A stretch of DNA of 64,000 bases from Oopsacas minuta (GCA_024704765.1 JAKMXF010000302.1:62001-126000); one strand, 5' to 3'. Shown: positions 3 to 16,307, numbered from the stretch's first letter. Numbers and translations: made by a program. The notes: a model not told the origin generated them from the letters alone.

Positions 3-1088
3 GATATTACTACAGAGCTGTCTGGCTTTGCATTGAACATAAACACGAATACTACTATTAGTAGAATTGAACCTTCAAATTATGACCATTCTCTCTCCCT
101 GATTCCTACAAATGATATTTCCCCTATCCTCCCAGAACCATTTCCTGAGATTTTAGAGCCCAATTATATTGCCCCTGTACCTGTATGTCTCACACCATCA
201 GATGGTACCTCTGCTACGAATTATTCCGATAAAGTTCGCAGAGAATTACCAGATCAGTACCGATCAGCTGGTGTCCCTATCTACTCTGCTTGTCCTTACG
301 GTAGCGGAAGATCTGAGCTTATGGATGCTAGAGGAATAGCTGTACAAAGGAATGCTAAGAGAATATACATTGCAGATAGAGGTAATAATCGTGTACAAGT
401 TTTTCGTGACACAGGGAAATTCGTATTTAGTTTCACTGACATAGAGATGGAAGGTCCAAAAGGTATTTGTATCAAAGAGAACCTTGGATTAGTATTCGTT
501 ACAATGTGCGACAAGAACTCTGTTCATTGTTACTCACTAGATGGTTACTTACTCAGAAAGATAGGTCGTTCAGGTGTGGGACTCTCTCAATTCAATCAGC
601 CCTGTGGTATAGCTACTGATAACATCTGTAAGGTTTATGTGTGTGACTTTGGAAATAATCGTATACAAGTGTTTACTAAGGATTTGAGATGCATAACAAT
701 CCTCACCAATAAAGTTACTGAACCAACAGACGTTAAGATTATTAACGATGTTGTGTACATATTAGATCATAGAAAGTTGTGTGTCAGTACATTCAGTAGG
801 GGAGGAGCCTTCATGAGTGAGATTGTATCTTGTGGACCTGAATCGTACCAGGTTAAACACCCATACTTCTTTGATATCGACTCCAGAGGCAATTTCTTGA
901 TATCAGATCTCTATAACGATTGTATCAAGGTATTCTCTCCGAGTGGTAAATTCCTCTGCGATATTGGGGCCCCTGGAGATGATGAGGGACAATTCATAAG
1001 GCCCACAGGCATTGCACTTGTTGAATCATGTATTGTTACGATATGTGAAAGAGCGAAGAATCAGCTTCAAATTTTCAAACTGGACTGA
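3..1088 (+). CDS. NHL-repeat beta-propeller protein (TRIM71/brat-like C-terminal half), 5'-truncated by the window edge
   Basis: Repeated NHL motifs (IYIADRGNNRVQVF, VYVCDFGNNRIQVF, GQFNQPCGIA, GQFIRPTGIA). The frame is open from base 3; the ORF-track start at 33 is a TTG. Confidence 0.85.
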   Translation, partial: DITTELSGFALNINTNTTISRIEPSNYDHSLSLIPTNDISPILPEPFPEILEPNYIAPVPVCLTPSDGTSATNYSDKVRRELPDQYRSAGVPIYSACPYGSGRSELMDARGIAVQRNAKRIYIADRGNNRVQVFRDTGKFVFSFTDIEMEGPKGICIKENLGLVFVTMCDKNSVHCYSLDGYLLRKIGRSGVGLSQFNQPCGIATDNICKVYVCDFGNNRIQVFTKDLRCITILTNKVTEPTDVKIINDVVYILDHRKLCVSTFSRGGAFMSEIVSCGPESYQVKHPYFFDIDSRGNFLISDLYNDCIKVFSPSGKFLCDIGAPGDDEGQFIRPTGIALVESCIVTICERAKNQLQIFKLD

Positions 1089-1830
1089 TTATAATTATCT
1101 GTTTACTAATACGAATTATTTGGAGTTTTATTGTTGTGCAATTTTTCTATTTCTTACATATTTTAATTATTTCATATTCTTATAATTCTCCTTTATTAAC
1201 TTAATAATATTAGCTCTTATCTTACTATGTCAGAAGTAAACCATCTTCTGCACGGGACTATTACCTTCTTTATACCATTCTGGATTCTGATATGGATCTC
1301 AGCCTGTGTGTTTGGCAGAATAAAACAGTGTAAATCTCCAAATTAGATTACCTAAACTGATGGAAAATTTCTTTTAAATGTTTATAAATTTTATTTGTTG
1401 TTAATGATTGCTTAATGCAAAATTGGAAATCAATTGTTTATTTTTTTTTTGTATTATTGTCTTGAGAGTTTTACATTTGAATGAACCATAGTAACTAAGG
1501 ATTATAAAGGAATGTTAATACGTATTATTTACTTTATAATTTTCTTTAACACATTCCATACGAACTTATAACTGTTGCCATGCAAATGAACTATGTGTAA
1601 CAAGATACTATTAGCTGTAGAACTCTTACAAATACACAGTATCACCACATTATTACGATTTACTGGAAACAGTAGGAATGTGGATAAAATATCAACATTC
1701 CAATGTGTATCTAGTGAAGCGACAATAAATCCATTATACAATATAATAGCTAAAAACCACTTTTCATAGAAATAACTTTACTTATTGTACTTACATTGTT
1801 TGTTGATAATCTAATAATTTATTAGTTCAT

Positions 1831-3345
1831 ATGATGGAAGAAGAATTGAGCTATTACAAAATGCCTCGTACAGGAGAGAGAGACCTGATTCAAACTCTTA
1901 ATAATCGTCTACAGGATTATATCGAGAAAGTGAAGAGTTCTTCAGAACAAGAGGATCTTGAGCCCAGACTAGATGAGTTGGTACGTAACCGAGATAATGA
2001 CATAGACTCTATCAAGAGTAACTACGCAGAGAATCTGATGGCTGCTCGTAGAACTCTAGATGAGACTGCTAAGGAGAAGGCTCAGTACCAGCTACATAGT
2101 ATCAGCTTGAAGACACAAATAGAGAAAGCTAAGCTGAATATTGCTCGCCTGAAGAGTGAGAATGCTGAAACCGACAATAAGCTGAAACAAATAGATGCAG
2201 AGACTGAGAGAGCTGAGCAAGAGAAATTAGAGGCAGAAAACGAGAAGGAAGAACTGGAGAAGAAGAAGATAACTCTAGAAGCTGCTATACAATCTAAGAG
2301 GCATTTGATTGATGAAGCTAAACTGGCACGAGTAGACACTCAGAACAAACTACAAACTCAAAGGGAAGAAGTAGAATTCTCTCGTAAACTACTCCAATCA
2401 GAGACAGAACACGAGGAGCACCTCAAGGATCAGCTGATTGCTCACTTCGGCAAGAGTGAAGCTGATCTACAAGCTGATATCCAGCAGAGACTGGAGGTAG
2501 CTATTTCTAATCTTACCGCCCGCACACAGAAGGATCTGCTAAATTATCGCGATGATTTAGAGACTCATTTCAGTGACAAGAAGCATTCTCTAGAACAGGA
2601 TATTGAATTGCTGCAGGAGAGAATCGAAGTTATACAGAAGGAAATACAGCGATTAAGTCATCTACAGAGTAGTTGTGACAAGAGAGAGACTAGCATACGT
2701 GAGAGAATGAAGTTCTTAAATGTGAAACTACAGCAACAGAAGGACCTGATAGAAGTAGATATACAGAGTCATGCTGAGAAAAAGCGCGATTTAGAAGAGA
2801 CAGCTCTCAGTATTGAACAGAATTATTTACAACAAATTGAAGAGTTGAGAGGATTACTAGAGCTTAGAAACGGATTAGATTTAGAGGTAGAGACCTACAA
2901 GAGAATGCTGAATGATGAAGAGAGACGGCTAAGCATACGGTTAGTTCATATTTGTAACGAAGGGGATCAATACACTACAGATAATCCCACTACTTCTGTG
3001 AATAACGAGTTCAGCTGCTCATTCGTAATCAGTCAAGTAGATTCTACTGGTAAATTCGTAGAGATAACTAATCCCAGTGATACTCTCCTCTCTCTTGCTA
3101 ATCACAAGATTAGAAATTCAGCTGGAGATTCTGAACAAGTTTACAAGTTCCATCAGCGTCATAGGATAGCTCCAGGCGGTGCTATGAAGGTGTGGGCACA
3201 TTGTCCAGAGGCGGTACGTGACCCTCCTAATGACATCATATGGAAGAAAGGGTCAGCTTGGAATATAGCAGCTGGGCAGATTGAACTTCTTAATGAAGCT
3301 GGTGAGGTTATCTCTTCCTATGAAAAGGATGCACCTCTGACCTAA
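1831..3345 (+). CDS. Lamin-type intermediate filament protein (long rod plus lamin-tail Ig domain), no CaaX
   Basis: IF rod start LNNRLQDYIEKV, rod end LEVETYKRMLNDEERRL, and lamin-tail-domain motifs (SQVDSTGKFVEITN, VKVWA, LLNEAGEVIS). Ends in DAPLT*. Confidence 0.9.
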   Translation: MMEEELSYYKMPRTGERDLIQTLNNRLQDYIEKVKSSSEQEDLEPRLDELVRNRDNDIDSIKSNYAENLMAARRTLDETAKEKAQYQLHSISLKTQIEKAKLNIARLKSENAETDNKLKQIDAETERAEQEKLEAENEKEELEKKKITLEAAIQSKRHLIDEAKLARVDTQNKLQTQREEVEFSRKLLQSETEHEEHLKDQLIAHFGKSEADLQADIQQRLEVAISNLTARTQKDLLNYRDDLETHFSDKKHSLEQDIELLQERIEVIQKEIQRLSHLQSSCDKRETSIRERMKFLNVKLQQQKDLIEVDIQSHAEKKRDLEETALSIEQNYLQQIEELRGLLELRNGLDLEVETYKRMLNDEERRLSIRLVHICNEGDQYTTDNPTTSVNNEFSCSFVISQVDSTGKFVEITNPSDTLLSLANHKIRNSAGDSEQVYKFHQRHRIAPGGAMKVWAHCPEAVRDPPNDIIWKKGSAWNIAAGQIELLNEAGEVISSYEKDAPLT

Positions 3346-3888
3346 CTCTACACATTACATCACTATAATTAGTTCTGTTCTATAGATTATTATTATTCTA
3401 AGCTCTAAGTTGTATATACACTTATTCCTTATATTCATGTATCATCCTGCTCTCTCTAATATTTGTTACTTGTCTATCTTTATTGCAATGAAAGGATTTA
3501 CATTATTTTACTAGAAATGGCAATATTTAGAGTGGAACATATTACGATGCTATATTTAGAGTGTCCGGATTATACAATTGAATCTAAACTTGCATTATAA
3601 TATGACATTTGGAATTGTTAATTAAATCATTCATCACGAGAACTAAAGGTCAGATTAGTTCCATATCGTAAAGCTAATGTATCCTACTAGCGTGTTAGAT
3701 TCATATATTCTATGAGCCGCATTGGGAAGCCGTTATAGATAATATTGTGGCTTTCTACCTAGGACTATCAGTTAGTGTCTATATATGTAGATCTCGCATG
3801 TTGTGCTTCATTTGACAACTATATAAACACTATATTCTATACATTATTAATTAATATAACCGATAGTATTAGATATAAAGTATTAGAA

Positions 3889-6657
3889 ATGGCAACACAA
3901 CCTCCCAGGTTAAGATCCAGATCATTAGCCAGTCGACCTGTCCGCCGCTCCACCCCCGCTCCTCTCATTTCGACACATAGTTCTACCTCGTCGGGCTCTT
4001 TTGTTGACTTATTCAAACAGCTGAGTCTAAAGGAGATGAAGATGCACGCTCCCTCTATTTGGAAACATGAGCTTGGTGCATTGAATGAAGACTGCTCGGG
4101 GCCTTTAGGAGTTAGTCAGGATAACTACACCAAAGACTACGTGCAGATAATCAGTCATCTGGATGTAGCAACCAAATTCTACAGCTCAGAACGTGCTGAT
4201 ACAGATAAACAATTCTACACAGTCTTGCTACTTATGAGAGTAGTGACGGATATCATGAAACAGCTGATGGATGAAATGTTCGTGATAGCACCTAATTACG
4301 ACTTTATTGACAATAACAATGAACCTGTTATAGGTAATGGGTATAGGACATTACTACATACTTCTGAGCGATGTTTGAAGGCTTGTCTGAGAGATTTGCA
4401 AGATTTCGCTAAGGCTAGAAGTAGTCGTAGTTATAACTGTAATAAGCATTACAGACACCTGACTACTGTATACAGACTGTTACTAGCTAAAGTACTGCTA
4501 ATCGACCAATCTCTGCAAATACAGATGTATTCTAAACAGGATTGTCTTCTTGCAGACAGAGATAAGCTACCTGATGGATTCATAGACAGAGCTATAGCGT
4601 TACCTATTGAGAACTTCTACGGTAGACATATGGGTCTACAGTACTCTAATCTATTGAGACCAATTCTTAACATGCTTGTGGTAGCCATGGTAACCCTTCA
4701 TGACTGTAAGAACACGACTAATGAGAACATCATCCAGCAGGCAGCTTCTACAATGGTATACGGGGGTCAGTATATGCTGGGAGATCCTGAAGTTAGAGCC
4801 AAGAAGGTAGCCAGGATGTCTATTGAATCTGATATAAGATTTACTAAGAATTTCTGGTCTATTTCAGAGAGTATAAGTGTGAGAGAGGTTATGGGTATGT
4901 TAGGACATCCTGCTGGCCTATCAGAGGAGATTACTATAGCAGCTAAACCTATAGAGTATGTAGGAGAGAATGGTCATAAGGTAGTGCTTACTCCCCCATT
5001 CAAGGGGATGGGATATGAACCTCTGCGTGCTCGTCTTATCTCTTATCTCTGGAGAGATGGACAGGAGAGAACTTCTAACCTTCTAACCCGCAAGCCTAAC
5101 TTGTACGCCAAAGCTTCTGGTCTCATAATCCATTTCCATGGTGGTGGATTTGTAGCACAATCCCCTAAATCCCATGAACTGTATCTCCGCTCCTGGTCCG
5201 AGCATCTGAACGTACCTATTCTCTCAGTAGACTATTCTAAGGCTCCGGAGGGACACTACCCCAGACCTATGGAAGAGGGCGTGTTCGCGTATACCTGGGC
5301 TCTACTGAACCTACACAAACTAGGTACCACAGGAGAGCGTATTATAATCGCTGGAGATTCTGCTGGAGGCAATATCTCTCTAGCAACAAGTCTGAAGGTT
5401 GTAAGTTTAGGGATACGTCCTCCTGACTCCATCTGTATAGCTTATCCCGTTACTTATATCGACAGAATTCCTAGTCCTTCTCGTATGCTGAGTTTGCTAG
5501 ACCCTGTCCTACCGTTTGGAATTCTACTCAGTTGTTTAAGTGCATACACAGGAGAGATTAATCAGATGTTAGATATAGATAATGATAAGAAGAGAGAAAT
5601 GGTGTGTGATCTATCTCGCTTCGCAAAGGAATTAGATTTGAAATCTAATCCGTTCTTATACGAAAGTTCTCACTCACTCCTCCCTAAATCTACTCCTAAG
5701 CGTCCTGCCCCTCCATTCTCCCGTACCAATAGTGACGGAGCTATAGTTCAATTCGAATCAGACACAGACTCTACGAAATCATTTGATATGTATAGCATAT
5801 CAGATTTAGACTGTTTCCATGATATACCAGAAACCATGAGCTTCTCTTCCTGCGAGACTCTAACTGGCAGCTTTACTACAACAGATAATTGTGACGTCAA
5901 ACCAAAGCGTATACCTCCTCCCAGACCCCCTCCTCCTAAGGACAGCTCTCACTCTATCGCCTCTTTTCGCTCTCTGGACATTGTAGTATCAGAAGAGATT
6001 GAGTGTCCCAACTACCTTCCTACACCCAAACCTATATACTACTCCGTAGCTCATCTAGCTAACGCACTAGCTAAGCCTTATGACGTAGTTAAGAAGCAAG
6101 ATGCTGTTGCTAATACCATGGATTCATCTGACTACATATCCTCTAGTTCGGATGATGAGAGAGCTCTAGCTCTCATTGAGCAGTCAGAACAAGATAGTTA
6201 TCATTCCTGTGATGATGATTCTGGATCTGAGGATGAGTTGAATAAACTAGAGGATTTATTGTGTGTGAAGTGTAAGCAAGTTGTGTCTAATTTCCGAGAG
6301 AGTGCTCCTAATGGGACTATTGATAATCTATTCAATGGTACTAAGAACACAGAGCAAAACACTAATTCACTCAAATCAGATCCATTCCTATCTCCCTATC
6401 TTGCTACTCCAGAAATGTTCCAAGGTATGCCTCCTGTCTATATCTATGCTAGTGCTCTGGACCCTCTTCTAGATGATTCTGTAGAATTTGCTAAGAAACT
6501 TAAAGCTATCGGCCATCCAGTCTATCTGTCAATTTCTCAAACTCTCCCTCACGGGTTCCTTTCCCTGGCACTCTCTCAAAAGTCAGGACCTGGAGAAGCG
6601 AACGAACTATTCATGCAGTATTTGAGACAAGCCCTTCTTAATGAGGAAGATGACTAA
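3889..6657 (+). CDS. LIPE: Hormone-sensitive lipase
   Basis: HSL N-terminal domain (FYGRHMGLQY), HFHGGGF oxyanion motif, GDSAGG nucleophile, LDPLLDDS Asp and HGFL His. Intronless; first ATG is at 3889 (the track start 3775 is GTG). Confidence 0.92.
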   Translation: MATQPPRLRSRSLASRPVRRSTPAPLISTHSSTSSGSFVDLFKQLSLKEMKMHAPSIWKHELGALNEDCSGPLGVSQDNYTKDYVQIISHLDVATKFYSSERADTDKQFYTVLLLMRVVTDIMKQLMDEMFVIAPNYDFIDNNNEPVIGNGYRTLLHTSERCLKACLRDLQDFAKARSSRSYNCNKHYRHLTTVYRLLLAKVLLIDQSLQIQMYSKQDCLLADRDKLPDGFIDRAIALPIENFYGRHMGLQYSNLLRPILNMLVVAMVTLHDCKNTTNENIIQQAASTMVYGGQYMLGDPEVRAKKVARMSIESDIRFTKNFWSISESISVREVMGMLGHPAGLSEEITIAAKPIEYVGENGHKVVLTPPFKGMGYEPLRARLISYLWRDGQERTSNLLTRKPNLYAKASGLIIHFHGGGFVAQSPKSHELYLRSWSEHLNVPILSVDYSKAPEGHYPRPMEEGVFAYTWALLNLHKLGTTGERIIIAGDSAGGNISLATSLKVVSLGIRPPDSICIAYPVTYIDRIPSPSRMLSLLDPVLPFGILLSCLSAYTGEINQMLDIDNDKKREMVCDLSRFAKELDLKSNPFLYESSHSLLPKSTPKRPAPPFSRTNSDGAIVQFESDTDSTKSFDMYSISDLDCFHDIPETMSFSSCETLTGSFTTTDNCDVKPKRIPPPRPPPPKDSSHSIASFRSLDIVVSEEIECPNYLPTPKPIYYSVAHLANALAKPYDVVKKQDAVANTMDSSDYISSSSDDERALALIEQSEQDSYHSCDDDSGSEDELNKLEDLLCVKCKQVVSNFRESAPNGTIDNLFNGTKNTEQNTNSLKSDPFLSPYLATPEMFQGMPPVYIYASALDPLLDDSVEFAKKLKAIGHPVYLSISQTLPHGFLSLALSQKSGPGEANELFMQYLRQALLNEEDD

Positions 6658-7863: not shown

Positions 7864-8027
7864 GTGCTATTTGAATTGAAAATATTCGAGAATATCTAGA
7901 TTGTATTTACAGAGAGGATATGTTACATAAATTTGGGTAGATTTATTATTGTTAAAATGTAACGGAGCAATAAATATACATATATATTAATTACATTATA
8001 TATCTAATCGTGGCTAACTTGCTTGTA

Positions 8028-10596: not shown

Positions 10597-11655
10597 ATGT
10601 CCCAATTAGTTGCCATAGGACTTATTGAGAAGGACACCGAGGATATAATCGAGTTTACTTGGGCCTACCCTACCATGGACAAATCCATCAAAGAACTCCT
10701 TGTAAGGAAGTGTCCTCCTAGCAACCTATCTGAATCCAATCAATATCTTTTACCCTATGTATTCAGCCATGGAGAAGGGTTCTGGTATTATATGCTAGCC
10801 AGTAAGTTCAATAATAAGGAATATTCTGGTTATGTTACTGATATATGCTTCACGATTCTGTCAAAAGACTTCCACCCTGAGAAGTATTACGATATATTAC
10901 AAGCTCTCCTGCAAACATTCCTATTCTCCAACAGTGTAGTTACCGTACTGAAATCTTATCTTAGTCTATTCGCTAAGAAGAGTTTAGATATTATTGGTAC
11001 AGATAAAGTGCTAAATATTAGTTCTTATGATCCTAGAAAAGCCTTCATTGCTTGTCCATTAAAACCACTAATATTACAGTTTGGTATTGAATCTATTCTG
11101 CTATACAATGCTATGCTACTCAAGTGTCGTGTCGTGGTATACTCCTCTGAGTTAGAAGCCCTGCTTGCCTTCACTAGAACTCTGCCTCTCCTGGCGTTAC
11201 ACAGGCAGAATTGGAGTATCGTATTCCCCTACGTAGATCTTGTAGATTATGAACTGACAAGTCTAAAGGAACAGCCGAATTATGTTGCTGGGTTTCTTGA
11301 CTCCTCTGTTGAGAATAGAATAGATCTATACGATATATTTGTTAATATTTCCTCTTCTACAATAACTATACCAGAACATGCTAAGAGTAGATTCAGTCTA
11401 AGCAAGGCTCATAAGGAAATAGCTAAGCTTATGATGGAGGTTGCTAATGATACGGGTAAGTCTGATCAGCAAGCTATTAAGGAAATTAACCTTAAGACTA
11501 AGGAGATGATAACTAACTTGAAAAATTTATCTATCCAAGAAGATGGGACCCCTGGGATGATATCTTACGAAATTCTCAAACAGAGAAAGTTCACCGCTAC
11601 AATGAGTAACTTTCTTTTCGCATTAGCAACAGTGGAAGGGCTAACACAGTTATGA
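10597..11655 (+). CDS. DENND10: DENN domain protein 10 (FAM45A)
   Basis: N-terminal GLIEKDT...WAYP, FHPEKY, ILLYNAMLLKCRVVVY and YVAGFLD motifs. Confidence 0.85.
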   Translation: MSQLVAIGLIEKDTEDIIEFTWAYPTMDKSIKELLVRKCPPSNLSESNQYLLPYVFSHGEGFWYYMLASKFNNKEYSGYVTDICFTILSKDFHPEKYYDILQALLQTFLFSNSVVTVLKSYLSLFAKKSLDIIGTDKVLNISSYDPRKAFIACPLKPLILQFGIESILLYNAMLLKCRVVVYSSELEALLAFTRTLPLLALHRQNWSIVFPYVDLVDYELTSLKEQPNYVAGFLDSSVENRIDLYDIFVNISSSTITIPEHAKSRFSLSKAHKEIAKLMMEVANDTGKSDQQAIKEINLKTKEMITNLKNLSIQEDGTPGMISYEILKQRKFTATMSNFLFALATVEGLTQL

Positions 11656-12236
11656 TCCATTTTATTATAATAAAAGGGTGTTTTGAATTGAATATTTCTT
11701 ATCGTATTTTCATTTATGTAATAATAGAGTACGTCAGGTTCAGAATTTTCTTACGATAAGGTCGTAAGTACATTTAGAGAATTAGACAACTTAGGTATAC
11801 ACTATCGTAATCAAAAATATTGCAAATACAATCTCTTAGAGATTTCTATTTTAGATTTCAGGTTCATGATTCATTACTGTAGACTTTCCTTTCAGTACAT
11901 TTTACCTAGACTTAGTCTTATAAACTATTAGAAAAGGAAAATGTTAATTTCTCCACATCTTTATGATATTTGTAATATCCTAAATAGTATTTTCTTAATA
12001 CTGTTAATGAAGTCATTATAATGTGACTTGAGTGCAACATGTGGCTATATTGCTTGCTATAGCCGTTAGTATGGAATTATGAATCCAAATAGAGAAGATT
12101 TCAATGTTATCTTAAAGACTAGTGTAGCACACAGTACAAAAAAGTATAAATAATATAGTATTACACATATATACATATGTATATATTTATTTTATTGTAG
12201 CTAACCCTATTATACTAGATTATTGAACGAACAGCT

Positions 12237-14746
12237 ATGAACGATGATGTTTGTAAGTTGCAGTTAATTAATGAGATAATTCAACTTGATTTCTTATCTA
12301 ATGCCTTGTCTTTATAGTTTTCAATATGGTTGTATGCAGCACCTCAAGAAGAGAGGTGATAAAGACTCGGAAGGATGTGACAATCAAGAAAGCACTAGAC
12401 CCCATCCTCAAGAGATGGGGATATCATGACGTCAGCAATGTCAAACCCCAGCTCAGATACTATGATTCTGAATTAAGGCCTCAAACATTAGCAGGAGACA
12501 CTGCCGGTATGGAGGTATTTCTGAAGTCAGCTGATTCTGTTGACGCCATGCTAGCAGGTTTTCATCCATTTTTAAACAAAGCTTCAGTAAGTGGCCTATA
12601 CATAATGGTGTGTATAATATCATACACTTATTGATATATTATTGCTTTTGTAGATGAAAAGCTTCACACAAGGTTACATGAAATTTGATGGTTGGTATCT
12701 GACGAGAGAGAGCTCATCTGGAGATGGACAGCTGTCACTAGCTGTGACGTAAGCATAAATTTAATCGTACTTTCATACGTACTTACATTTATGAGATTGT
12801 TGAATTGTAGGTTCTCTAACCAGCTAAGACACTTCAAAATCAATTTCAGTCAGGCAGAGACTACATATAAGATAGCGTGTAGGTCTTTTGAAAATTTACA
12901 TCAGTTAATAGACTACTATAAAGACCATCCTCTCAAGAAAACAGCAGATGGAGAAATTTTCCTCTTGCATCCTATGTTAGGAAGCAAAAAGGTGAGATCA
13001 TATGTACATAGCAGTCGACTAAATCAGTCTGCCGTCTGATTTTGTATAACTATCTGTATATCGAACCTTAAGTTTATCTTTTATTTATATTTTGACCCTT
13101 TCAAGCCTGATTCACCAGAACAGCCAATGCCTGTCTCAAGTACTTACTCTGGTGAGAGACCCCTCCCTCCTATACCTGCCATACTTGCAACACCTACAGT
13201 TCCGGGATATCTAACCCGTGGTAAATCCAAAACCCTACCCCGAAAGCCCTCGAGAGAACCACGTGATGAATATAAACCTATAAATTCCATAAATCCCAAA
13301 GATCGCCCCCTACCCCCTCTCCCACCTCTCAACCATCCTCCTCCTCAGCTTCAAAAGCCAAGTATTATTACATCAAAGCCCAAACAGGATATTCTTACAA
13401 GCAAAGTTATTAATAATAATCCACCTAAGACAAAACCTGAACTTAAGCCCAAACCAGAATCAGAAATTTCTCCGAAACATGTTATTGATTTGAATCTAAA
13501 GAATAGGAAAGATTCTGGGCAATTTTCCGATCACAATGGTTTGAAATCTCCCTTGGCTCTAACTCCTCGAGCTTCTCCCAAACCTGTACTCACTCCTCAA
13601 GTCACTCATAGTGATCATAGTGTTGAAGAATATCCTCCAGCCTTGCCATGTCGACAGCAAAAATGCAATCCAAATTCTAACCATTTTGACAACTACCCTG
13701 AAATAAAGCCTAATATTAATTACAATGATAATAAAGGGGCAGATGATTCTAGACAAGATCCTTTCAAGAAAATCAAACCTCCGGATTCCTCAATATTAAA
13801 ACCAAAACAATCAGGAACAGCTCTTCCCCCTGCACAAGAGAATAACTTACCACACCCATGGACTAAGGTTTACTCCAACTCTCAGGGAAAATATTACTAC
13901 CATAATACTATCACCAACAAAACCAGCTGGAAAATACCGATACCGAATCAGCCGGTTGAAAAAAAGCCCTCTCAGACGACCTCTTCGGACAATAATTCCT
14001 CAAGAGATCCTCCCATGAGACAGAGGTCTGTTTCCACTATAGAGAAATCTCGTCACAGGAGAGCTCCCTCTCCTGACAGACAAACTGATCTAGTTTTTAA
14101 AGAAGTCCCAGAAGAACGTAAATTCAACGGAGCTGCACAATCTCCGCCTCTCTTTAGACAATCTTCTTATCCTAAACCACTACCCATAACGACGAATAAG
14201 CCTAAACGCGTGGACCCAAATTATGACTATTTATCTGGTGCCTCTTCTCCTTCAAACAATGACCATGTGGTTAATCCATCTCTAGCAAGGAAGGACAATA
14301 AGCCTAAATCTCCATCATTGAACTTATCAAAGCATTCAGATCCTGTCAATCCTTCTCGTCCTGTCTTCAATAACTCACCAGTACATAACGCTCCTACTGG
14401 TAAATCAGTAAAGGTAGGTAGATACAATATCCCAGCTCCTCCTCCCAACCTACCACCTGCATTCTCTAAAGAATCTACACCTCCTATTGTAAATAACAAC
14501 AGTAATAGTACCAATCCAAAATACAGTACTCAACCGCAGAACAATAGAAACAGTTTTTTGAATAGTATCCATGGTTTCAAACAACAACAACTAAGACCTG
14601 TTACTCCAGATCCCTCATCTAGTCCTTCTGATGAAAATTCTAATCACACTCTCCTAGGGGTGTTGAAAAGACGAATGGAGAAGAGAAATAGAGTGTTACA
14701 AGACTCAGACGAATCTGATTTCGAAAATCCTGATGATGACTGGTAA
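12237..14746 (+). CDS. Multidomain adaptor: Raf-like RBD + SH2 + proline-rich region + WW + WH2-C-A (putative Arp2/3 activator), 5 exons, ~733 aa
   Basis: Exons 12237-12252, 12318-12586, 12654-12748, 12811-12991 and 13106 (or 13124)-14746 join in frame across GT-AG introns. RBD-like REVIKTRKDVTIKKALDPILKRWGY; SH2 GWYLTRESSS...LRHFKI...FENLHQLIDYY; WW LPHPWTKVYSNSQGKYYYHNTITNKTSWKIP; WCA at the C-terminus ending DDDW*. Confidence 0.75.
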
Positions 14747-15146
14747 ATAAAGACAGTATACCCACACTAACTATGATGTATTTATCATGTGTTATATGTG
14801 GAAATCTTATGAAATTATAATCGTAAATATCTTGTAAATACTTGTAAAAATTTTACCGCACTTGTTCATCCAGGAATTGTTCATGATGAATTGACTTGGT
14901 TGTTTTGAGTTATGAAGCATATTATTTGTATGTTTAAAGAATTGGTGCAAATATTTTATGATCTGTTATTTGTATTTATTGTTCCATTTCCCTTGCGTAT
15001 GCGATATGCCTTTCGGGGCATATCTTTGTACAGATCTCATAGGTATCGCATTCATTCTTCTCCTATTTAATCGTGTTATACTAGTGAGGCTCTACTATAG
15101 TTGTGTATTGTTATTATGTTACGTTAATCTGAGAATTGAAATACAA

Positions 15147-16307
15147 ATGAAGGAAGAGAGGAAAATGAAGAAATGTACATGTAGCTTAAAGAGTTGTATA
15201 TTTATATTTTGTTGCTGCTTCAATATAATATCAGCTGTTTGTCTATGTTTCTTTATTTACCATTGCTTCATCTTGTTGATATTCACTCTTGATGCTTATG
15301 GAGGGTCTACATCTACTTGTAGAAGTTATTTCGTATCAGCTGATAATTACAAATACACTAGTAATATATCTAACCCTCTCTCCACAAACAATGCATCAAA
15401 CATTAGTGGGGGTAGATATAGGATGAATGAGGCTAGGACAATAGGGTTACACAACAGCTACCATATTATGAATTCATTATTTAGTCAGACATCTTGGGCT
15501 GCATACATGTTTGTATTTGTAAGTGCATGGAGCTACACACACCCCAGTTTAACAGGCCAATTGGAACAAGGATATCGAGTGTTTGAGATAGATATACATG
15601 CACGAGATGACGCGTTAATGGTCTACCATATACAGCTATTCGATCAGCTGACTACTTGTTATTGTCTTAGTGAATGTATAAATGAAATCAATTCTTGGTC
15701 TGATGCTAATCCATGGCATTTCCCTATAATTTTAGAATTCGAATACAAGTACTATTGGTATGAGGACGCTTACATATATCAGGGTAATAAGATCCAGTTT
15801 AAGCACATACTAGCACTTGAACAGGAGCTCATAAACGTGTTTGGAGGGAAACTAGTTACCCCTCAGTTACTAAGGGGGAAATATTCGACCCTCTTAGAAG
15901 CTATTAACGTCACTAAATGGCCAATAATTGATCAGGTGAGGGGTAGAGTATTTGCAGTGATGTGGGATGATACTGAATTGCTTGATATCTATCTAGAGGG
16001 TGACCGAGCTGATGAACCTGTTCTGTTTACGTTATATACCTCTGATAATGAACTTAACGGAGTGTTTGATAAATCTGGTAATCCAGTTGGTAAACAAGAA
16101 ATTATTAATTCGTCAGTAGAAACTGGTCGTATCCTAAGGACGAGGGTAGATTCAAGGTTGGAGTATAATCCAGAACGTAGGAATGTAGGACTAAATTCTA
16201 AAGCTCAATTACTAATCACAGACTTATTAGACAGGCCTTTATTCGAGGATTTGAAGAATCACTGTTATGTCTTAACTGATTTCTCTGAGTATGTTTGTAT
16301 TGGGTGA
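15147..16307 (+). CDS. Membrane-anchored PI-PLC X-domain protein (bacterial Ca2+-dependent PI-PLC-like)
   Basis: IGLHNSYH, YTHPSLTGQLEQGYRVFEIDIH and WSDANPWHFPI motifs. Cys-rich N-terminal hydrophobic anchor and several N-glycosylation sequons. Intronless; alternative ATG at 14958. Confidence 0.72.
   Translation: MKEERKMKKCTCSLKSCIFIFCCCFNIISAVCLCFFIYHCFILLIFTLDAYGGSTSTCRSYFVSADNYKYTSNISNPLSTNNASNISGGRYRMNEARTIGLHNSYHIMNSLFSQTSWAAYMFVFVSAWSYTHPSLTGQLEQGYRVFEIDIHARDDALMVYHIQLFDQLTTCYCLSECINEINSWSDANPWHFPIILEFEYKYYWYEDAYIYQGNKIQFKHILALEQELINVFGGKLVTPQLLRGKYSTLLEAINVTKWPIIDQVRGRVFAVMWDDTELLDIYLEGDRADEPVLFTLYTSDNELNGVFDKSGNPVGKQEIINSSVETGRILRTRVDSRLEYNPERRNVGLNSKAQLLITDLLDRPLFEDLKNHCYVLTDFSEYVCIG

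Follow-up and report, generated by a model that had tools for sequence, protein, structure and literature searches.

WASP-family nucleation-promoting factors are classified by the part that lies ahead of their WH2-connector-acidic (WCA) tail, because that part determines which signal switches on branched actin. To our knowledge, the inputs of all described WASP subfamilies are GTPases, lipids or regulatory complexes, and tyrosine-kinase signals reach them only by way of separate SH2/SH3 adaptors. Here we analyse a gene of the glass sponge Oopsacas minuta, LOD99_4865, which occupies positions 12237-14746 on the + strand of a stretch of 64,000 nucleotides (GCA_024704765.1 JAKMXF010000302.1:62001-126000; "the window" below, with all positions counted from its first letter). 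Our analysis suggests, with a probability of roughly 65%, that the product of this one expressed gene is a nucleation-promoting factor of the WASP-family type (class I), restricted to sponges, in which an SH2 domain, SH3 ligands, a WW domain and a WCA tail stand on the same polypeptide. The features on which this reading depends are as follows.

12237-14746, + strand: whole coding region, five exons, coding sequence of 2202 nucleotides, 733 codons (733 amino acids), equal to LOD99_4865
12237-12252, 12318-12586, 12654-12748, 12811-12991 and 13106-14746, + strand: the five exons, from conceptual splicing
12320-12532, + strand: beta-grasp (Raf-RBD-like, that is, like the Ras-binding domain of Raf, or ubiquitin-like) domain, residues 7-77 (6-77 in the fold model), from the AlphaFold2 model and fold searches
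12560-12979, + strand: SH2 domain, residues 87-183, spread over exons 2-4, from Pfam
13157-13177, + strand: first RPLPxxP motif, R205-P211, read from the sequence; class I SH3-ligand consensus
13304-13324, + strand: second RPLPxxP motif, R254-P260 (RPLPPLP), read from the sequence
13847-13939, + strand: WW domain, residues 435-465 (W439, W462, P465), from Pfam
14543-14602, + strand: WH2-like motif of the kind that binds actin monomers, N667-V686, from profile alignment to the second WH2 of N-WASP
14648-14698, + strand: amphipathic connector (C) helix, T702-L718, matched by alignment with the C helix of N-WASP, IVGALMEVMQKRSKAI
14699-14746, + strand: acidic (A) motif, Q719-W733 (positions 14699-14743), with terminal Trp and then the stop codon, from the translation

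Judged by its profile matches, the tail is a true WH2-connector-acidic module and a homologue of the VCA region of N-WASP. The protein ends in ...DSDESDFENPDDDW. A preliminary description of the locus, made by reading the DNA, had picked out WH2, central-helix and acidic strings in this order; all three are present, at coordinates correct to within 3 nucleotides, and the order is borne out by the matches to N-WASP VCA. When the single Oopsacas tail is compared with the sequences of the Protein Data Bank (PDB), the sole match is an N-WASP CA peptide at a non-significant E of 7.1, and a search with two tails reaches E 0.39, likewise not significant. Seven glass-sponge tails taken together as a profile match the N-WASP VCA chain 6uhc_H at E 1.3e-6, over N-WASP residues 428-499, and the alignment stays colinear from the second WH2 and the linker into the connector helix, which has a conserved Arg, and on through the acidic stretch up to the last Trp. 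The rest of this profile's PDB matches below E 0.001 are N-WASP VCA chains, a WASP chain being weaker at E 0.13, and a ten-tail profile that spans the sponges finds N-WASP at E 9.6e-6 and the WAVE1 VCA at E 2e-4, so that with both profiles every match below E 0.001 is a WASP-family VCA chain. The terminal Trp is invariant (10 of 10 aligned tails), and among 165 proteins compared an acidic tail ending in Trp is restricted to members of the family. We also considered a chance look-alike of a WCA tail, which is ruled out by the significance and specificity of the seven- and ten-sequence profile matches.

Does this tail belong to the same gene as the domains upstream? Within 12237-14746 on the + strand the coding sequence lies in four separate open reading frame (ORF) pieces, which can be joined in frame through four GT..AG introns of 65, 67, 62 and 114 nucleotides, with donors GTAAGT, GTAAGT, GTAAGC and GTGAGA and with AG acceptors. 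The spliced translation is identical in every letter to P0001, the NCBI entry 'hypothetical protein LOD99_4865' of Oopsacas minuta, and the five-exon model proposed in the preliminary description is therefore the annotated gene model. The locus is covered by four public sequencing runs from one sample. Three of these look genomic, with even depth and Nextera adaptors, while the fourth, run X4, we read as RNA because its depth favours exons, its adaptors are of the TruSeq type and its contigs are spliced. Contigs of run X4 show all four joints (12252/12318, 12586/12654, 12748/12811 and 12991/13106) and omit exactly 12253-12317, 12587-12653, 12749-12810 and 12992-13105; inside intron 4 the depth of this run is ~170, versus ~800-3500 in the adjoining exons. 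Independent support for splicing comes from the SH2 profile, which on separate exons scores 14.8 and 18.4 bits for complementary halves and runs from end to end only after the exons have been joined. The locus is one expressed gene with a five-exon spliced transcript; in-frame splicing, identity with LOD99_4865 and the RNA joints all agree with the GT-AG introns originally proposed.

On the spliced protein SH2 and WW, two of the domains named in the preliminary description, exceed their Pfam thresholds. The SH2 profile (PF00017) matches residues 87-163 over profile positions 2-77 of 77, with E 3.3e-10 and 40.4 bits against a cut-off of 21; the FLVRES-type Arg113, within the motif YLTRES, is invariant across the family, and a conserved His134 is also present. 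An AlphaFold2 model of residues 1-195, with a predicted local distance difference test score (pLDDT) of 84, consists of a beta-grasp domain followed by a canonical SH2, for which the best solved matches in Foldseek are the SH2 domains of Nck1 (E 8e-8) and Grb2. By its profile match and its FLVRES Arg the SH2 is bona fide, and phosphopeptide binding is predicted. The WW profile (PF00397) matches at E 3.9e-9 and 36.8 bits against a cut-off of 26.9, and the two Trp and the terminal Pro are present. Between these domains lie the two RPLPxxP motifs, which we take to fit the class I Src-SH3 consensus, and which are kept in all family members compared.

What, then, stands in place of the regulatory regions of other WASP-family proteins? 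Pfam applied to all 733 residues finds SH2 and WW only, and none of WH1, GBD, WHD, WAHD or WMD, in line with the absence of WH1/GBD, WHD and WAHD that had been read from the DNA. Since it has no WH1/GBD, WHD, WAHD or WMD, LOD99_4865 falls outside the described WASP subfamilies, and by a definition based on the WCA tail it is most likely a WASP-family-type protein that belongs to an unrecognised, apparently sponge-specific subfamily. A literature search for a factor combining SH2 and WCA found no description, which agrees with the preliminary statement that no described nucleation-promoting factor has this architecture, and the Oopsacas genome paper makes no mention of WASP, Arp2/3 or SH2.

Relatives were sought by a full HMMER search of 1.84 billion representative proteins. 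For the large exon the glass-sponge orthologues are P0002, P0007, P0009, P0014, P0034 and P0015, the last from a Vazella pourtalesii transcriptome in which the transcript carries the WCA tail; for the N-domain exon they are P0010, P0011, P0018 and P0030. At three glass-sponge genomic loci (L001-L003) the exon for the proline-rich/WW/WCA part is preceded by those for the N-domain and the SH2, and in-frame junctions between them can be made. Between the SH2 exon and the large one these loci have one more small exon, with its intron (L001 5967-6027, L002 ~3810-3990, L003 ~3850-4000), and the lack of this intron in Oopsacas fits intron loss in a compact genome. Outside the glass sponges, full-length members occur in Halichondria panicea (XP_064400015), Corticium candelabrum (XP_062522612) and Oscarella lobularis (XP_065829636), with further members represented by a fragment from Ephydatia muelleri, a complete transcript ORF from Oscarella pearsei and a demosponge-like Logan contig. 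Full-length members have the order SH2, two RPLPxxP motifs, WW, a long proline-rich region and a WCA tail that ends in a D/E-rich stretch and W, and all of the named members are annotated 'uncharacterized' or 'hypothetical'. Atlas searches by feature and by shape returned generic WASP or SH2-adaptor clusters only, at lead-level scores.

The preliminary description had treated the locus as a one-off, and in this it was mistaken, since the family is already in the databases as 'uncharacterized protein' from at least three sponge classes. The family sequences are public and unstudied; the SH2-bearing subfamily itself is most likely new. Its architecture recurs in part: SH2-WW-WCA is found in other sponges, while the RBD-like domain is found in glass sponges only and is absent from all full-length members outside them. 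XP_064400015 of Halichondria panicea has two SH2 domains, and in the demosponge proteins P0038/P0154 (Halichondria) and P0072 (Ephydatia) a second SH2 stands where glass sponges hold the beta-grasp domain; homoscleromorph members have nothing at that position. Because the domain is missing from the members of the other classes, we take SH2-WW-WCA as the core of the family and the RBD-like domain as a glass-sponge addition. On these comparisons the N-terminal slot of the family has been remodelled at least twice, and the family as a whole is apparently specific to sponges, in which it spans glass sponges, demosponges and homoscleromorphs.

How might such a protein work? We propose that the SH2 domain would dock it on tyrosine-phosphorylated receptors or scaffolds, and that the RPLPxxP motifs and the WW domain would bring in SH3-containing (Src-type) and proline-motif partners. 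After clustering, the WCA tail would pass an actin monomer to Arp2/3 and so activate branching. The relay from phosphotyrosine through Nck/Grb2 to N-WASP, which works in trans in other animals, would here be collapsed into a single polypeptide, to which the beta-grasp domain of glass sponges may add an input from small GTPases or an autoinhibitory contact.

Several observations weigh against reading LOD99_4865 as a single-gene, sponge-restricted activator of Arp2/3, and they are best set beside the alternatives on which they bear. The kind of run X4 is a guess, and its data are assembler contigs from one sample. The preliminary description had looked to RNA across the intron at 12992-13105, and the joint 12991/13106 is indeed there, carried by a single X4 contig of which the shorter side is only 27 nucleotides long; moreover, an ATG at 13127 could begin an independent ORF of 539 amino acids. 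One might then suppose that the five-exon model is an annotation artefact, and that the RBD-like/SH2 part and the WW-WCA part are separate genes. However, the joint coincides exactly with the predicted GT..AG and the depth falls within intron 4, the same exon order with in-frame junctions recurs in three other glass-sponge genomes, and SH2 and WCA stand together on one transcript ORF of Oscarella pearsei and in the RefSeq models of three other sponges. Taken together, the joints in RNA, an exon order that is conserved and orthologues on single transcripts rule out two separate genes, to which we accord almost no likelihood. The restriction to sponges is open to a different objection: when the family alignment and the SH2-WW region of Corticium were used in word-indexed searches, only sponge proteins stood among the matches listed, but proline-rich words and a short reach restricted both searches, the one with the family alignment stopping at 8000 proline-rich candidates, and their sensitivity to proteins from outside the sponges was limited. 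As for the tail, acidic stretches ending in Trp also occur in inhibitors of Arp2/3 such as Arpin. The protein could instead be a scaffold with SH2 and WW domains, and its tail could bind actin monomers or Arp2/3 and yet not activate, being either very weak like WHIMP or an Arpin-like competitor or inhibitor, in which case branched nucleation at phosphotyrosine sites would be tuned rather than driven. Inhibitors such as Arpin have the acidic part only, whereas the sponge tail has W, C and A in full, colinear with N-WASP VCA down to the connector Arg and the terminal Trp, and conserves all three across three sponge classes. Still, the WH2 of Oopsacas does not reach the Pfam cut-off (PF02205; E 0.02, 15 versus 23.1 bits), the best of ten family tails reaching E 0.0022, and relative to N-WASP two extra residues separate its helix from the LRPV motif. 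Most glass sponges share this insertion, the canonical spacing LLDQIR..KLRPV being kept in P0034, the most divergent orthologue, and the WH2 of demosponge members diverges even further than that of Oopsacas. The potency of WCA tails is also known to vary widely among real family members, WHIMP being very weak (PMC7112243). On balance we consider a tail that does not activate unlikely, and continue to read LOD99_4865 as a probable nucleation-promoting factor.

The role of the N-terminal domain is a separate matter, and here the alternative carries much more weight. The preliminary description had called this domain a Raf-type RBD. What stands of this is the fold: the domain is modelled at pLDDT 81-84 with the order beta-beta-alpha-beta-(alpha)-beta, and in VIA the best structural neighbours are RBDs of RAF proteins, the top five matches being CRAF/ARAF RBDs, with the lowest root-mean-square deviation (1.5-1.7 Å) and the highest identity (17-19%). 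The Raf type is only partly supported: the Pfam RBD is absent in Oopsacas, SUMO and other ubiquitin-like domains score nearly as well, and an invariant Trp replaces Raf Arg89. The domain may instead be a generic ubiquitin-like or interaction beta-grasp that does not bind Ras or Rap, for example one that regulates the SH2 or WCA within the molecule, and Ras would then not be coupled to actin at all. Consistent with this, Oopsacas has no match to the Pfam RBD (PF02196) at E<=10, and the domain is absent from demosponge and homoscleromorph members. In Foldseek searches of PDB, Swiss-Prot models and AFDB clusters, SUMO, ubiquilin, ISG15 and the like rank level with or above the RBDs; RBDs of RGS14 and SIN1 are among the matches, at template modelling (TM) scores of 0.65-0.76, and SUMO and other ubiquitin-like domains score almost level with those of RAF. 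The top VIA matches, on the other hand, are a weak pointer towards Ras binding, and so are two results from the orthologue at L002. There, in one of six orthologues, the Pfam RBD aligns in register at E 0.011 and 16.1 bits, under its cut-off of 25.7, and the only match among PDB sequences is a designed Raf RBD, 5yxi, at E 0.96. The 5yxi alignment sets the family's invariant LKRWG against LKVRG of Raf. It places the invariant Pro34 and Trp39 at Raf Lys84 and Arg89, which we take to be the basic Ras-contact residues of alpha1, so that these basic contacts are not kept; the equivalents of Raf Arg67 and Lys87 are retained as Arg17 and Lys37, and a beta2/alpha1 face rich in conserved Arg and Lys also speaks against a generic role. 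The five orthologous N-domains are 45-68% identical, and from codon comparison the N-domain exon is under purifying selection (dN/dS ~0.06-0.13 for the N-domain and SH2 exons, ~0.1 for the N-domain, at saturated dS). Residues 1-85 have no relatives beyond the glass-sponge orthologues in Pfam at E<=10, in a profile search of PDB sequences or in phmmer against the 1.84 billion proteins, and for residues 1-190 the nearest language-model neighbours are Grb14 clusters, with a score of 0.75 that serves as a lead only. The modelled domain resembles a Raf RBD in shape and, faintly, in sequence, and Ras binding is putative. We hold the generic beta-grasp to be a little short of an even bet. That the new SH2-WW-WCA subfamily has in glass sponges a working Ras/Rap-binding RBD, and would act as a coincidence detector that couples GTPase and tyrosine-kinase signals to branched actin without Nck/Grb2-type adaptors, seems to us doubtful.

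The transcript and the large exon have further features, as follows.

12217-12236, + strand: 5' untranslated segment, beginning at an AG acceptor; X4 contigs extend further upstream
14222-14233, + strand: conserved tyrosine motif Y560-D-Y-L563, from sequence comparison among family members
14396-14458, + strand: TGKxVKxG+xxIPAPPPNxPP motif, from alignment, immediately upstream of the WH2

The tyrosine motif has the form YDxL in glass sponges and NYVTM in homoscleromorphs, and the YDxL tyrosine is a candidate phosphorylation site. TGKxVKxG+xxIPAPPPNxPP is nearly invariant in the glass-sponge orthologues and not present in the members from other sponge classes; possibilities for it are a profilin or SH3 site, or an extra contact with actin. 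At the other end of the transcript, contigs of run X4 break at 12217, just past the AG, and then run upstream into the 18 letters TCTTCATAAAAAACTTAC, which do not occur in the 64-kilobase window even with 2 mismatches allowed. These letters may come from a 5' exon farther away or from a leader added by trans-splicing; the glass sponge Aphrocallistes vastus is reported to have a spliced leader (PMC10282587).

In glass sponges the gene stands in the syntenic order LEM, SPA/Avl9-like, SH2-WW-WCA gene, optional PI-PLC, RabGAP-TBC and ThiF. Directly upstream in the window, at 10597-11655 (+ strand), is a single-exon gene of 352 amino acids that Pfam marks as SPA/Avl9/DENND11-like, and which has the same place in L001-L003. 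Directly downstream, at 14958-16307 (+ strand), is an ORF of 449 amino acids with PI-PLC-C1/PI-PLC-X (E 1.7e-44); a PI-PLC gene is found at the same site in L003 and not in L001 or L002.

If our reading is right, the fusion of SH2 to WCA, conserved in three sponge classes or more, would amount to a natural 'short circuit' of the adaptor relay. It would offer a compact system in which to ask how phosphotyrosine signalling joined the cytoskeleton early in animal evolution, and how much of the regulation of N-WASP is needed once recruitment is direct. Moreover, the beta-grasp of glass sponges, the tandem SH2 of demosponges and the bare SH2 of homoscleromorphs together show how domains were shuffled at a single position while the rest of the protein stayed conserved.

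Several known systems resemble parts of this architecture. From Raf-like RBDs (RAF1, ARAF, RGS14; PF02196) the N-domain differs in that it falls under the Pfam threshold and has Pro and Trp at the positions of Lys84 and Arg89. SH2D2A/TSAd and HSH2D share with the sponge protein an N-terminal SH2 followed by a long proline-rich tail with SH3 ligands; neither these nor Grb7/10/14, which have a PH and BPS region between RA and SH2, have a WW or WCA, and no orthology is detectable. WHIMP, WAML and WAWH are lineage-restricted like the sponge family and combine a C-terminal WCA with divergent N-termini (PMC7112243, PMC3298513), but none of them has an SH2, WW or beta-grasp domain. WHIMP is WAVE-like, confined to mammals and linked to signalling by Src-family kinases (PMC7112243), and the 2012 survey that proposed WAML and WAWH makes no mention of SH2 or of sponges (PMC3298513). 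In N-WASP and WASP, as in LOD99_4865, a proline-rich region precedes a C-terminal WH2-connector-acidic module with a Trp near its end; the sponge protein, however, lacks WH1/EVH1 and CRIB/GBD, has SH2, beta-grasp and WW in their stead, and carries only one WH2, into which most glass sponges have two residues inserted. A functional parallel would be the relay from Nck/Grb2 to N-WASP, which likewise has an SH2 to recognise phosphotyrosine and a WCA to activate Arp2/3, an activity that for the sponge protein is predicted. In that relay SH2 and WCA lie on separate proteins joined through SH3-polyproline contacts, whereas in the sponge protein the two are fused in cis, and the molecule has no SH3 domains of its own and bears SH3 ligands of the RPLPxxP type instead.

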